From the NCBI GenBank assembly GCA_950097015.1, contig CATNEN010000011.1:4030001-4094000 (forward strand): a DNA stretch of 64,000 bases. The letters run 5' to 3'. How positions within the stretch are numbered: the stretch's first letter is position 1; every line of letters begins with the position of its first letter. Shown piece after piece: positions 60 through 7,762 of this stretch. Source of the stretch: Macrostomum hystrix. Taxonomy: Eukaryota; Animalia; Platyhelminthes. Position numbers and translations under genes: made by a program. The notes under the pieces are model-generated. The model was not told where the DNA came from. It did not search any database and saw only the letters and a program-made list of their open reading frames with translations.

Positions 60-2568
60 ATGAATAATGAGTCACTGCTTCAGTCTAAAAATAGAATCAA
101 CTCCTCTGCACATTGCAGGCATCAACAACCAGATCAAGTGCACACACCGACGGACAGCTTTTTGAGCTGTCCAACTCTTCGACTAGACGCGGCCAATCAG
201 AGACGCGGTCGTGCGCGGAGCGCTTTTCGAGGCCTACTCAGTCCGTTGTTAATCCTTCTATGTCTGGGCATTGGGCGTTGCCTATTGGAATCGCGCCTAA
301 GACACGGCCCTCTGACTGGGAATCCGCTCAGCTGTCTAGCCACTGGAGGCGGTCCTCTATGCCTTGCCAGTCTGGCAGTCCTAGCCTTTGTCGCGTTGAA
401 TATGGCAGTTCTATTGGCCAATTGCGGTGGACATCGTCGGCTCGGTGTCGTTAGCGCCGCCTGCCTGCTTCTCGTGTCTCCGGCCTGTGTTGTGCTGTGG
501 AGCAGGCCATCGCCTGGTAAGCAGTGCATCCCCTGCTTGCTGGTAACAGCGGCATGATAATAATATCTAACATTCTACAACACCTTGGAAACTTTTCTTC
601 CTGCTAATTCTAAAGCTGACCCTCCCTAATGCTTCAGTAGGGTCATTGCTACCCTCCCTGAAGCATCAGTTGTCTGTAGCTACCCTCCCTGAAGCATCAG
701 TTGTCTGTAGTTGTCTGTTGTCTGTAGCTCAGTTGGCTGTAGCTACCCTCCCTGAAGCTTCAGTAGGTCATAGCTACCCTCCCTGAAGCTTCAATTGGTC
801 ATAGCTACCCTCCCTGAAGCTTCAGTAGGTCATAGCTACCCTCCCTGAAGCTTCAGTAGGTCATAGCTACCCTTCCTGAAGCTTCAGTAGGTCATTGCTA
901 CCCTTCCTGAATCATCAGTTGTCTGTAGCAACCCTCCCTGAGGCTTCAGTTGTCTGTAGCTGCCCTCCCTGAAGCTTCAGTAGGTCAAAGCTACCATTCC
1001 TGAAGCTTCAGTAGGTCAAAGCTACCATTCCTGAAGCTTCAGTAGGTCATAGCTACCATTCCTGAAGCTTCAGTAGGTCATAGCTACCATTCCTGAAGCT
1101 TCAGTAGGTCATAGCTACCATTCCTGAAGCTTCAGTAGGTCATAGCTACCATTCCTGAAGCTTCAGTAGGTCATAGCTACCATTCCTGAAGCTTCAGTAG
1201 GTCATAGCTACCATTCCTGAAGCTTCAGTAGGTCATAGCTACCATTCCTGAAGCTTCAGTAGGTCATAGCTACCATTCCTGAAGCTTCAGTAGGCTGTAC
1301 TGTCATCTTCAAACCCTCAATTCCCGCAGTGCTCAGCTTTGCTGCCATGTCAGCCAGTGTGTGGCTATTCCTCAAGCTGGCCACATTTCATCTAGTGGCC
1401 TTCAAAACAGTCACATCAGGCCGGCAGAGCGAAGCCGGGCCTGTAACAACGAGACGCCTGTGTTATTTCGTCTTGTCCTCTCGTTTGGCAACATCCGAGA
1501 CTGGCGCTTTCAGAGCAGATTGGAACACTCTAAGCTATAGTCTGCAACTAACTGGCCTATTGGCAGCATCTGTCTCCCTGTCTCAGCAATGGCTTCTGCC
1601 TTCGCTGGAAGCTGCTGCCGCTTCAGCTGGCGACACTGCGGCCTCGAATGATGAGCAGTCGGCGACCACTCCGCACTTCTGGCTGTTGGTGACGTTGGAA
1701 CGCCAGCTTCGGTTGTCTGCGCCCGTCATCGCCGTCTGTCTTCTAGTCGGCTTAGCTGGAAATCGATTTTTTAAACTCATCGATCACTGCTGTCAGACTA
1801 AAGATCTGGTGAGAATTTTATTATTATATAAATTTTGACTTTGCTTGTACCATTTTGTACTTTATAATAGTGTTTTATTGTGAACCTTCAAGGCCTCTCA
1901 AAATGATCCATTAGGGCCACTCTAAATTATCCTTCAAGCCTTTTTAAAATTATCCTTCAAGCCTTCTTAAAATTATCCTTCAGGACCTCATAAAATTATC
2001 CTTCAGGGCCTCTCTAAATTTTTCTTCAGGGCCTCTCAAAATGATCGTTAATGGCCTTTTTTGATAACCTTTCAGGCCCTTGTAAGAATGATCGTTCAGG
2101 TCATAATTTATATGCGAAGCTGCAGGATCTTCTTTATAGTATATTTCAGGTCCTTCATTGGCAGTAGCTATAGAGACAAACTAAATTAACAAAGCAACAC
2201 CCGCCTACCCAATGCAGAAATCGTCAACAATCAGTGCTCAGCAAACAGATGAGCAGTGGTGGAACGCCTCGAGCCTGTCCGATCTATTTCATCAATCCAG
2301 CCTAGCCTTGTCAGCATCGTCACCAATTAGACAACTGAAACTGCCGGGCCTGGCTTGGGCCCTCCTAACCCAGCTAGTGGTGTCTGTGTCTCTGCGTTCA
2401 CCCAGGCTTTGGCCCCTACTGATTGTCACCGCTGTTCTACCTGCGCTGAATTTAGTCAGCAAAAAATTGGGCAACAATGTGTTTGTCTGGCTGTGCATGG
2501 TGCTTGGCCTACCAGTTCTGTCCCAGTTAGCCCACACTGACTACTACCAGTACTATCTAGTATGGTGA
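60..2568 (+). CDS. DGAT1: DGAT1-like MBOAT membrane protein, probably catalytically dead. Three exons: 60-516, 1330-1808, 2218-2568 (~428 aa).
   Basis: The spliced translation is collinear with DGAT1: VHTPTDSFLS~CHRLQDSLFS, AFRGLLSPLLILLCLGIGRCLLESRLRHG~[40 protein letters not shown]~QQWMVP, ERQLRLSAP~ERLLKLAVP, QWWN, VVSVSLRSPRLW~LVSVPLRMFRLW, GNNVFVWLCMVLGLP..TDYY~GNAAVWLSLIIGQP..HDYY. GT/AG junctions (517/1329 phase 1; 1809/2217 phase 0) keep the frame. The exon 3 acceptor is the least certain. Confidence 0.85.
640..1295 (+). repeat. 31-bp minisatellite in DGAT1-like intron 1 (GAAGCTTCAGTAGGTCATAGCTACCATTCCT), ~20 copies
   Basis: Directly visible tandem units, homogeneous from ~970. Contains the 12-bp palindrome CTGAAGCTTCAG. 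Confidence 0.95.
1885..2100 (+). repeat. Degenerate tandem repeat in DGAT1-like intron 2 (TTATCCTTCAGGCCTCTCAAAA-like)
   Basis: Recurring CCTTCA(A/G)G(G)CC..AAAAT(T/G)AT units. Confidence 0.7.
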
Positions 2569-3277
2569 CACCCTAATTGCAGTCTTGTTTTGACTTGTAA
2601 ATATAAACATATTATTATTGTATTACTATTTATAAGTAGCGTGTTTTTGAATCAATACTAATTATACTAATACCAATGTAAGTTTCATTGTGAATGATTT
2701 CACTAGCAATAAATCAATTGCAGTCAATTTCATTACTATTCAGAAATCGAATAGTCGATTATTCGTTTTGTCTTTCTTTGACGACAAGGTTTTGTTTAAA
2801 AATAGTTTCTAGCGATTTGAAACTTTAGTGTACAAAAAGTACATAAAACATCTTTTGGTTCTAAATAATTGGGAAATTCAACATAAAAGAAGCGATTTAT
2901 CTGTCAATAAGAGTCTCTTTATTCCCTAATTGCTTTATTTTTAATCAGTAAAATTAATAGCAGCATCAGGTGGGGTGTGGCGGCCTGCTAGTCCATGGAC
3001 AAAACAGCTGTACACATCCTTCAATAGCTACGACTTTAAATCTGGTCTAACTTGGCTTTTTTAAAGCTTTATTTTTTAAAGCAAACAAAAAATTGCAAGC
3101 TACCAATAATAACACCTATAATGACCAACGTTACCAGTAATTTAGACCCGGGATTAATTTTAATCTTTATTTTTAATACCAAAATGACTCCCATAGAATC
3201 TAAACTATCAAAATCAGTCTTGATTTATTCATAATCATTCTTTAATTATAGCTACTATTTTACAAATTTGTTTCCAG

Positions 3278-4399
3278 TCGGCAAACTACTCAGCCGGCCT
3301 GTCGGAGTACGCCGACAAAGGCACCCTAGGCCTGCCGGAGACTCACGAGTCTCAGGCCGACTGGGAGGCTAAAACTCGCCACCTGGCTGAACTCATTCGT
3401 CAGCCAGGAGCGCGGCTGGTTGTACACACCGGCGCTGGTATCAGCACAGCCGCCGGTATTCCGGACTTTCGCGGGCCAAACGGCGTCTGGACGCTGGAAC
3501 GTCAAGGTCGAGTAGCCGAGGCTGGCGCCAAGTTTGAAGAGGCCAGGCCGACTCTGACCCACGCGGCTCTGGTTGCCATGGAGGCGGCAGGCTATTTGCA
3601 CTATTTAGTGACGCAGAATGTTGACGGCTTGCATCTGCGGTCTGGCTTTCCGCGCAATCGCCTGTCCATACTGCACGGCGACATGTTCGTTGAACGCTGT
3701 CGCCGTTGCGGCCTGCACCAATGTCGCCAATCTGGCCCGGTTGAGACCGTCGGCCAGAAGCCGACGGGTCGATTCTGTACGGCTCCGGCCAGGCGTGGCA
3801 GAAAGAAAGATCAGCCTGCTGTGGATGGAGGCGTTTGTGGCGGGGAGATGCTGGACACTGTCCTCGATTGGGAGCATCAGCTGCCGTTGGCTGACTTACG
3901 TCGGGCTCGCGAGCATGCCAGTAAGGCTACTGTCAATCTGGCCCTGGGCACCAGTTTGCAAATTGTCCCCGCCGCCGACTTGCCAACAATGGGCGGAAAG
4001 TTGGTCATTGTTAATCTCCAACCGACAAAGCGTGATTCTGACAGTTATTTAAGAATCAACGCCCGCTGCGATTCAGTGATGCGACTGCTGTGCCGTGAGC
4101 TGGGTATTGGCGATGAGATTTTGGCGCCCTTGCTTCAGCTGCAGCATTTGCGTCTGTTGTCTAGGCACACTAAGAAAAGTGAACGACTTCCTTGGCGATT
4201 TGCGTCTTTAGAAGGTGACTTTTCCGAGGATTCTAAACAGCTCGTGACGTTGTCGATTGATAACGAATCTCATCGCGAAGAAGTTAAAGTGAAACAGGGG
4301 AACATCAAGACTGAAAGAGGAGCTCAGCAACCAACTGAAAGCGGAGCTCAACAACCAACTGAAAGCGGAGCTCAACCACCAACTGAAAGCGGAGCTTAA
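3278..4399 (+). CDS. SIRT6: NAD-dependent deacylase sirtuin-6. Single coding exon with no genomic ATG; the frame starts at acceptor TTCCAG|TCG. It would extend to 4687 if TAA 4397 were sense.
   Basis: The frame from 3278 reads SANYSAGLSEYADKGTLGLPE, matching SIRT6 (M)[21 protein letters not shown]. Also HTGAGISTAAGIPDFRGPNGVWT, TQNVDGLHLRSG, LHGDMFVERCRRC (catalytic His), a second Cys pair, DTVLDWE and GTSLQIVP. In frame with the supplied ORF 3578-4399. Confidence 0.95.
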   Translation, partial: SANYSAGLSEYADKGTLGLPETHESQADWEAKTRHLAELIRQPGARLVVHTGAGISTAAGIPDFRGPNGVWTLERQGRVAEAGAKFEEARPTLTHAALVAMEAAGYLHYLVTQNVDGLHLRSGFPRNRLSILHGDMFVERCRRCGLHQCRQSGPVETVGQKPTGRFCTAPARRGRKKDQPAVDGGVCGGEMLDTVLDWEHQLPLADLRRAREHASKATVNLALGTSLQIVPAADLPTMGGKLVIVNLQPTKRDSDSYLRINARCDSVMRLLCRELGIGDEILAPLLQLQHLRLLSRHTKKSERLPWRFASLEGDFSEDSKQLVTLSIDNESHREEVKVKQGNIKTERGAQQPTESGAQQPTESGAQPPTESGA

Positions 4400-4572
4400 C
4401 AACCAACTGAAAGCGGAGCTCAACAACCAACTGAAAGCGGAGCTCAACAACCAACTGAAAGCGGAGCTCAACAACCAACTGAAAGCGGAGCTCAACAACC
4501 AACTGAAAGCGGAGCTCAACAACCAACTGAAAGCGGAGCTCAACAACCAACTGAAAGCGGAGCTCAACAACC
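4319..4572 (+). repeat. 24-bp coding tandem repeat (AQQPTESG) in the SIRT6 C-terminal tail, ~10 copies
   Basis: GCTCAACAACCAACTGAAAGCGGA units; one copy has CAA>TAA at 4397. Confidence 0.95.
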
Positions 4573-5059: not shown

Positions 5060-5712
5060 CCTCCCATTTCGGACTGTCATTCTACAAGATCCCATTTCGG
5101 ACTGTCATTCTACAAGATCCCATTTCGGACTGTCATTCTACAAGATCCTTTCGGACTGTCATTCTCCAAGATCCCATTTCGGACTGTCATTCTCCAAGAT
5201 CCCATTTCGGACTGTCATTCTACAAGATCCCATTTCGGACTGTCATTCTACAAGATCCTTTCGGACTGTCATGCTCCAAGATCCCATTTCGGACTGTCAT
5301 TCTCCAAGATCCCATTTCGGACTGTGATTCTCCAAGATCCCATTTCGGACTGTGATTCTCCAAGATACCATGTTGGACTGTGATTCTCCAAGATCCCATT
5401 TCGGACTGTGATTCTCCAAGATCCCATTTCGGACTGACATTCTCCAAGATCCCACTTCGGACTGACAGTCTCCAAGATCCCATTTCGGACTGACATTCTC
5501 CAAGATCCCATTTCGGACTGTCATTCTCCAAGATCCCATTTCGGACTGACATTCTCCAAGATCCCACTTCGGACTGACAGTCTCCAAGATCCCATTTCGG
5601 TCTGACATTCTCCAAGATCCCATTTCGGACTGACATTCTCCAAGATCCCATTTTGGACTGTGATTCTCCAAGATCCCATTTCGGACTGATATTCTCTAAG
5701 ATCCCATTTCGG
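5060..5712 (+). repeat. 28-bp minisatellite between SIRT6 and SMYD4-like (CTCCAAGATCCCATTTCGGACTGTCATT), ~23 copies
   Basis: Visible tandem units; they explain the minus-strand repeat ORFs. Confidence 0.95.
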
Positions 5713-5800: not shown

Positions 5801-7762
5801 ATGCCGACGCCAGCTGCACAGCGCACCGGCAGCCGGTCCATGCCGCAGGCCATGAAATGCCTCGGCGCTGAGGCGTCAACCACCGCCCTGGCCTGGCTGG
5901 CAGCTCCGGAGGCTGCCGACCGCACTCGCGCGGGTTCGCCAGCTGAGTTCGAGCTCCTGCTAGCCCAGCAAGTCCTGGCCTCGCTTGATTGGTCCAGCTA
6001 CGTTGCCGAAGCCGTCTCTGATTGGCCGCGTCAGCGTCCGTTGCCTGGCGACGCTAAAAGTGCAGCTAGACTAGCCGAAGCTCGCCTAGCCGGAATCGAA
6101 GCCCTGGACTGTGGACTTCTGCGACTTGCGGCTTTGCGTTTCAGCGAGTGCGCCAGACACGCCCAGCCGGGCAGCGTCGACCTCGCCGTAGCCTTCGCCA
6201 ATCGCTCGCTTGCTTTCAAACGTCTGGGCCTCTACGCCGAGTCCGTAGCTGATGCCGAGGCGGCTCTTAGCCTGCCCTACGGCGACGATCGGGTCGGCAA
6301 ACTTTTCGCTCGCATCGCTGAATGCCAGAAACTAATTTCGGCCAAGTCGACTGATTCGACATTGTCTTCGCCACCCGGTCAAGAATGGAAGCCGAATCCG
6401 CACCTGCCGCACGCCAGTAACAAAGTCGATCTCGCCGTAGCCGATGACAATCGCGGTCGTAGCCTAGTCGCCCTGGAAGACATCGATGTTGGCGAATTGG
6501 TGATTTTCGAACCGGCTTTTAGCGCCGTTCTCAATTCCGGCCTCCGTGAGACCCACTGCGCCACTTGCCTGACGCCTTGCCATCGACTCCTGCCCTGCCA
6601 CGGATGCTCTGCTGTGGCCTTCTGCTCCGAGGCCTGTCGCGATCTGGTCGACGGCGTCCACGCGGCCGAGTGCGGCTGGCTTGCCAGCTGGCTTGACTCG
6701 GCATTCAACGCAGGCATTGGTCGCCTAGCCTTCGCCACAGTGTTGTTCGCTGGTGGACCCCGGGCTGTTGTTGACGCAGTTAATAAGAGGCTCACTGAAT
6801 GTGCCAAGCCTGGAGTGGATGCTGTATTCGGCGCTGTTGGCGACTATCAATCTGTGCTGGATCTTGTAGCCGGGGAGACGCGCAGAGGACCTGAAGATCT
6901 GGCCCGTCGAGTGGGCGTCGCCTATCAGATGGCTCTGCTCCTGAGTCCACAGTTTGAGTCGATCGCTTCGCCGGAATTCGCGGCCAGGCTAGCCGCAGCC
7001 CTGCTGCATCATCTCATGCTGATACCTTGCAATGCGCACGATGTCACCGCTCTGACAGCCCCGCCCTCTAGGCTGACCAGCCCGAGTCTGACTGACAGCG
7101 CCAGCTCCGTCGAAGTTTCAGCGTTGACCATTCGCGATATCGGATCGGCAGTTTATCCCACGGCCAGTCTGATCAATCACTCCTGCGATCCCAATCTAGT
7201 CAGGGTCACTGGCGCCGGCTTGCGCTTGGAGATCCGCGCTCTCCGGCCCATTGCTAAGGGCTCAGAGTTGCTTGACAACTACGGCTGGCACTGGGCGGTG
7301 CATTCCAGACAGCAGCGATTGGAGAACCTGCGGTCACAGTACTTGTTCGACTGTGACTGTCAGGCATGCCAGGGTGAGTGGCCCCTGTACGAAGGGCTGC
7401 TGTCGATTGAGCCCAATTGGGTTGTCGAGGGCGAGGCCAAAGTCGATGACACTGTCGTTCAAGACGAGGCTGAAGACAGCAATACCTCCGAGGTTGTCGC
7501 TAAAGTCGAAGTCGATAGTACCATCAAAGCCGAAGTGGAGTCCGCTGTCGCAGTTGTTGTCGAATTTGTGTCGTCTTCATCGGCGTCAGCTGGACAACTG
7601 GGCGCCGATTTGAATGCGCGTTTCGCGCCGCGCCTGCTGTCTCTGATTGGCCTACTGCAGCGTCGGGTGCGTCGGCCGCATCGATGGTTTAACGACGCCG
7701 AAGAGTGCATCAAAATGGTTTGGAGCGCTCAAGGCCGACTGGACGCCGTCGGTACAGACTGA
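5801..7762 (+). CDS. SMYD4: SET and MYND domain protein, SMYD4-like lysine methyltransferase, intronless, 653 aa
   Basis: N-terminal TPR (AFANRSLAFKRLGLYAESVADAEAAL), SET-N (RGRSLVALEDIDVGELVIFEPAFS), MYND (CATC..CHGC..FCSEAC..HAAEC), SET-C (AVYPTASLINHSCDPN..ELLDNYG) and post-SET (YLFDCDCQAC). The TPR before the SET domain favours SMYD4. Confidence 0.85.
   Translation: MPTPAAQRTGSRSMPQAMKCLGAEASTTALAWLAAPEAADRTRAGSPAEFELLLAQQVLASLDWSSYVAEAVSDWPRQRPLPGDAKSAARLAEARLAGIEALDCGLLRLAALRFSECARHAQPGSVDLAVAFANRSLAFKRLGLYAESVADAEAALSLPYGDDRVGKLFARIAECQKLISAKSTDSTLSSPPGQEWKPNPHLPHASNKVDLAVADDNRGRSLVALEDIDVGELVIFEPAFSAVLNSGLRETHCATCLTPCHRLLPCHGCSAVAFCSEACRDLVDGVHAAECGWLASWLDSAFNAGIGRLAFATVLFAGGPRAVVDAVNKRLTECAKPGVDAVFGAVGDYQSVLDLVAGETRRGPEDLARRVGVAYQMALLLSPQFESIASPEFAARLAAALLHHLMLIPCNAHDVTALTAPPSRLTSPSLTDSASSVEVSALTIRDIGSAVYPTASLINHSCDPNLVRVTGAGLRLEIRALRPIAKGSELLDNYGWHWAVHSRQQRLENLRSQYLFDCDCQACQGEWPLYEGLLSIEPNWVVEGEAKVDDTVVQDEAEDSNTSEVVAKVEVDSTIKAEVESAVAVVVEFVSSSSASAGQLGADLNARFAPRLLSLIGLLQRRVRRPHRWFNDAEECIKMVWSAQGRLDAVGTD

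Follow-up and report, generated by a model that had tools for sequence, protein, structure and literature searches.

The window, by which we mean the whole 64-kb stretch of Macrostomum hystrix DNA analysed here, holds a sirtuin gene that follows a gene of ~360 residues and precedes a SET-domain gene, an order that is kept in Macrostomum lignano. The features that bear on the expression of the sirtuin are collected in Table 1. Further along the same strand, the SET-domain (SMYD-like) gene at 5801-7762 has a genomic ATG of its own and a syntenic counterpart in M. lignano, a SET gene of 646 residues (L001:10216-12156).

Table 1. Features at the SIRT6 locus, in window coordinates.
Feature	Position	Strand	Evidence
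ATG/GTG motif, proposed cis donor (ATG 2563-2565, then GTGACA)	2563..2568	+	overlaps the upstream-gene stop codon; not used as a donor in contigs
Outron/intergenic spacer, from the upstream-gene 3' end to the trans-splice acceptor	2724..3266	+	depth 0 over 2735-3259 in all four runs; AATAAA at 2708
Nearest in-frame upstream stop, TGA	3221..3223	+	codon scan
Pyrimidine-rich tract and 3' splice acceptor TTTGTTTCCAG, used for spliced-leader trans-splicing	3267..3277	+	spliced-leader letters end here in 4/4 runs; CTTCCTCCCACCTCCAG occupies this position in the M. lignano orthologue
SIRT6 orthologue, single coding exon, codon 2 (TCG, Ser) to stop	3278..4399	+	translation; Pfam SIR2; human SIRT6 match; RNA contigs
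First genomic in-frame ATG, exon residue 101, 3' of GAGIS	3578..3580	+	ORF list; ATG scan; M. lignano alignment (Leu there)

In translation, the sirtuin exon comprises 373 uninterrupted codons, a count that excludes the donated methionine discussed below, and its frame carries a Pfam SIR2 domain (E 4e-21). The best match among solved structures is human SIRT6 (3k35_A and others; E 1.5e-80), in an alignment that spans residues 1-277 of the frame and 2-271 of the chain; human SIRT6 scores 274 bits, as against 153 for SIRT7 and at most 86 for other sirtuins, and nearly all of the named top matches in a large protein set are SIRT6. Standing in register with 3k35_A are HTGAGIST, PDFRGP, LHGDMF (containing the catalytic LHG/His) and the four zinc-binding cysteines (ERCRRC...FCT...VCGG). 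Judged by these similarities the gene is SIRT6, a class IV sirtuin, with SIRT7 and the other sirtuins more distant. The C-terminal tail of the protein consists in part of GAQQPTES repeats, encoded by a 24-bp tandem repeat of 11 copies with 97% matches at 4310-4572; the tail of the M. lignano orthologue carries another repeat (STERTLES.../SESAHCTS).

The exon opens with TCG GCA AAC TAC TCA GCC GGC CTG TCG GAG TAC GCC GAC AAA GGC, which reads S-A-N-Y-S-A-G-L-S-E-Y-A-D-K-G, and the acceptor TTTGTTTCCAG, ending at 3277, lies directly 5' of the first of these codons. An earlier, sequence-only reading of this DNA had held that the conserved SIRT6 N-terminus begins at residue 2, immediately after the acceptor, and the structural alignment agrees, since the serine at 3278 (frame residue 1) aligns with human SIRT6 residue 2. 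It had further proposed that the gene has no genomic start codon, and here too an in-frame scan bears it out: none of the 18 codons between the TGA at 3221 and position 3278 is ATG. The only near-cognate starts in this interval are ATT and ATA codons, all of which lie 5' of the acceptor, are therefore missing from the mature mRNA and were rejected as starts. Across all frames, the sole ATGs between 3150 and 3700 are at 3184, 3578, 3618 and 3683, the first of which is out of frame and 5' of the acceptor. The first in-frame ATG, at 3578, falls past the NAD-binding GAGIS motif as that reading had stated, 49 residues after it (exon residue 101, against residue 52 for GAGIS at 3431-3445). We considered and rejected the 300 nt without an ATG in any frame (3278-3577) as a signal in itself; whereas a mononucleotide shuffle gives a P(0) of 0.04 for this stretch, a codon-order shuffle gives 0.70, because the stretch is simply without methionine codons.

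Evidence at the RNA level comes from Logan contigs, rather than raw reads, of four public runs (X2-X5), all from a single study and a single organism. These runs contain all sampled words of the SIRT6 exon, and their contigs were aligned to 2060-4305; run X1 (organism A), with 0.08 of the sampled words, was left out of the contig alignment. The run records carry no statement that the material is RNA, and this was deduced from intron removal: contigs of the upstream gene in all four runs join 1807/1808 to 2217/2218 and so remove a GT..AG intron (1809-2217), from which it follows that the contigs represent RNA. Every run yields a single SIRT6 contig (4/4) of 1103-1104 nt, which covers 3277-4305 and beyond with 0 differences up to 4305 and stops ~50 nt past that position, inside the 24-bp tandem repeat and short of the predicted stop codon at 4397-4399.

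At their 5' ends these contigs begin with 22-23 letters that are foreign to the window, (T)GCGAAGACTCAATTTATTGCAT, followed by the G at 3277 and TCGGCAAAC, such that the reading across the joint is ...TGCGAAGACTCAATTTATTGCATG and then TCGGCAAAC. In the part of PMC8629364 that describes it, the spliced leader (SL) of M. lignano is a 35-nt sequence, CGGTCTCTTACTGCGAAGACTCAATTTATTGCATG, whose 3' end, ...CTGCGAAGACTCAATTTATTGCATG, terminates in ATG. The 24 leader letters on the contigs (G 3277 included) are identical to the 3' end of this SL, confirming for the present gene the expectation that a flatworm SL ends in AUG. Because the G at 3277 could belong either to the genomic AG or to the end of the SL, placement of the cut is ambiguous by 1 nt, with the mRNA sequence unchanged. 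The mature mRNA accordingly reads ...UUGCAUG and then UCG GCA AAC in the contigs of all four runs, with the SL AUG in frame and directly adjoining codon 2. The junction to 3278 that the sequence-only reading had asked to be sought is therefore present in the contigs of 4/4 runs, which read ...GCATG before TCGGCAAAC and restore M-S-A-N-Y as it had predicted. No other AUG precedes residue 101 in the mature mRNA, and by vertebrate Kozak standards the SL AUG does not stand in a strong context (UUGC AUG U). A search of the 64-kb window for the SL 24-mer with up to 3 mismatches gave no occurrence, and an Rfam scan of the whole window found no SL RNA gene; the leader is therefore not a local cis exon.

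Comparison with M. lignano places the same boundary at the same codon. The large protein set holds no protein identical to the SIRT6 frame, and the closest is M. lignano BOX15_Mlig002561g2, which is 80% identical and labelled 'partial' (5'-partial) by NCBI; at the nucleotide level the exon is 78% identical to M. lignano (GCA_002269645.1). The orthologue starts SANYSAGLSEY, with the same serine, right after ...CTCCAG, and in three M. lignano contigs the coding sequence begins directly after ...CTTCCTCCCACCTCCAG. Similarity between the DNA of the two species starts exactly at TCCAG/TCGGC, with none that is meaningful 5' of that point, where the window species is AT-rich and M. lignano has a tandem repeat. 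This repeat, of ~60 bp, fills the SIRT6 outron of M. lignano (L001:5400-5900; ATG region L001:5866-6000). The statement that there is no genomic ATG fails for M. lignano, in which in-frame ATGs lie 45 and 28 codons 5' of the acceptor with no stop between; it is strictly true of the window species only, and for M. lignano the argument is built on where the annotated transcript starts and on the conservation of the acceptor. A naive ORF call at the M. lignano loci would add a spurious N-terminal extension of 45 residues.

Selection on the coding sequence extends to the very start of the exon. Over codons 2-101 the window species and M. lignano differ by 48 synonymous and 16 non-synonymous changes (dS ~1.2, dN/dS 0.063), and over codons 2-31 dN/dS is 0.013. 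The low ratio over codons 2-101 indicates that the first 100 codons are translated and constrained.

Upstream of SIRT6, on the same strand, an open reading frame of the preceding gene spans 2212-2568 and its transcripts end at 2703-2723, just past an AATAAA. Low-depth contigs (3.8-4.7) over 2060-2246 in runs X3 and X4 probably represent retained intron or pre-mRNA. The spacer from the upstream poly(A) site to the acceptor at 3277 is ~555 nt, which falls within the same-strand spacing of <1 kb to an upstream gene that serves, in the relevant part of PMC8629364, as a criterion for M. lignano operons. At this distance the two genes may share a polycistronic unit in which SIRT6 lies downstream. 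No contig spans 2735-3259, where a rare precursor could not be shown by contigs, and the depths of the two genes differ (~140 vs ~20-30). Further tandem repeats, with units of 31 bp (21 copies; 631-1294), 23/69 bp (1885-2057) and 28 bp (23 copies; 5062-5712), occupy an intron of the upstream gene and the interval that separates SIRT6 from the SET-domain gene; they agree with a published comment that the spacers of Macrostomum operons are enlarged by repeats.

The upstream region also bears on the alternative that fares best against trans-splicing, namely that the start codon comes from a cis-spliced exon ending in ATG, located either at 2563-2566 where ATG meets GT or beyond the window, and that the SL form is a minor one. 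An ATG followed by GT is present at 2563-2567, and contig assemblies do drop rare variants. However, this motif overlaps the upstream gene's stop codon, upstream contigs read through it to their ends at 2703-2723, and in the contigs of four runs no joint enters 3278 from anywhere in 2060-3277, the SL being the sole sequence found before 3277/3278. The junction that the sequence-only reading had itself named as its refutation, ATG/GTGACA at 2562-2565 joined to 3278, is thus not seen. Together with the M. lignano annotation, which likewise begins at codon 2 as a 'partial' protein, these observations make a cis-spliced start very improbable.

A start at 3578 (Met101), with a truncated N-terminus and the 100 upstream codons serving as an untranslated leader, appears slightly less probable still. 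It would draw on the weak context of the SL AUG and on the fact that the exon has no ATG in any frame before 3578, the one that a ribosome skipping the SL AUG would reach. Its product would be without the NAD-binding motif, however, and the codons it leaves untranslated are those under strong purifying selection, which align with residues 2-103 of human SIRT6, GAGIS and PDFRGP among them. Met101 is moreover a leucine in M. lignano, in which the first methionine of the exon is residue 136, beside the catalytic histidine; downstream initiation is therefore no conserved alternative. We give as little credence to the idea that assembly falsely fused the SL letters to this gene from another SL-bearing transcript, the gene itself being a start-less pseudogene or one with an unassembled 5' exon. 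The evidence does consist of contigs throughout, and 22-23 letters are fewer than the 31-letter word of the assembler graph; yet four samples independently yielded the same joint, exactly at a canonical AG acceptor, the 373-codon frame is intact with a dN/dS of 0.06, and the annotation of the M. lignano orthologue starts at that position too.

We therefore favour, with a probability of about 0.88, the reading in which the SIRT6 pre-mRNA is trans-spliced between CAG (3277) and TCG (3278) and the SL provides the start codon that the genome lacks. On this proposal the AUG-ending SL, joined directly to codon 2, creates AUG-UCG-GCA-AAC (M-S-A-N-Y...) and with it the canonical SIRT6 N-terminus. Ribosomes would then start at the SL AUG, a step that we infer by analogy with the schistosome mRNAs of Cheng et al. 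2006. Pre-mRNA that escaped trans-splicing would give no active sirtuin, because translation from the sole remaining in-frame AUG would begin past the NAD-binding GAGIS motif. The coordinates and factual statements of the sequence-only reading, from which this proposal derives, all proved correct on recheck.

The mechanism itself has been known in flatworms since 2006, and SIRT6 is confirmed as a new example of it. According to the summaries in the relevant passages of PMC9851317 and PMC12582326, the spliced leaders of flatworms have AUG at their 3' end, and Cheng et al. 2006 showed by experiment in Schistosoma mansoni that this AUG serves as an initiator. The present gene resembles the S. mansoni cases, as summarised there, in its AUG-ending SL, the in-frame joint to a start-less ORF and the conserved N-terminus that is restored; it differs in that those cases come from S. 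mansoni with translation proven by experiment, whereas here the gene is SIRT6, the animal is a free-living macrostomid and translation from the SL AUG is a deduction. Another known case is S. mansoni Sirt7, the initiating ATG of which is supplied by the SL (Lancelot et al. 2013, PMC3772001). This is likewise a flatworm class IV sirtuin with an SL-derived start codon, but it is a different paralogue (Sirt7, not Sirt6) and belongs to another lineage; SmSirt6 is described in the same paper as a single 1287-nt transcript with the SL unmentioned.

Within the genus, SL trans-splicing has been described in M. lignano (Ustyantsev and Berezikov 2021, PMC8629364; Wiberg et al. 2023, PMC10468722), with which the present case shares the same SL over 24 nt, a CAG acceptor and a position <1 kb downstream of a same-strand gene; the passages of these two papers that deal with trans-splicing contain no list or analysis of SL-AUG-dependent genes. 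In its section on the leader, Wiberg et al. 2023 (PMC10468722) regard the final ATG of the SL as probably a start codon, and left it untrimmed to avoid annotation problems. Trans-splicing has been reported for 85% of neoblast-specific genes in M. lignano. Open reading frames made by a spliced-leader start codon have also been collected as slORFs (Song et al. 2023, PMC9851317); the likeness is in the principle, while that study ran slORFfinder on nematodes, ascidians and euglenozoa, with the help of ribosome footprints, and used no Macrostomum data.

Outside Macrostomum, the SIRT6 gene of Echinococcus granulosus keeps a genomic ATG (L004:1501, ...TTCCAGTGGAATGTCACTAGATTAT), and among the three flatworms examined a start at codon 2 occurs only in the two Macrostomum species. 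The E. granulosus ATG lies 4 nt after an acceptor-like TTCCAG (L004:1480-1510), and an SL joined there would put the SL AUG out of frame with the ATG of the gene.

For annotation, the value of this case lies in the errors that such genes invite. Gene predictors truncate them to the next ATG, which here, as the sequence-only reading foresaw for standard ORF finders, is residue 101 and costs 100 residues including the NAD-binding motif; the other outcomes are a 'partial' label, as given by NCBI to the M. lignano orthologue, or extension to a spurious upstream ATG. A rule that looks for an acceptor directly before a conserved codon 2, in combination with an AUG-ending SL, would mend many Macrostomum gene models.

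In biological terms, the codon-2 start is common to two Macrostomum species, while the tapeworm keeps its genomic ATG. One could go further and suppose that the SL dependence of the SIRT6 start is an old, conserved state in Macrostomum, given the same acceptor in two species separated by a dS of ~1.2, and that it acts as a control point; we regard this extension as doubtful. As only trans-spliced molecules could make active SIRT6, trans-splicing efficiency would gate enzyme dose, and if the supposition were true it would thereby set the dose of a regulator of chromatin and genome stability. On the favoured reading, SIRT6 would add a conserved nuclear enzyme to the flatworm genes that are not expressible without trans-splicing.
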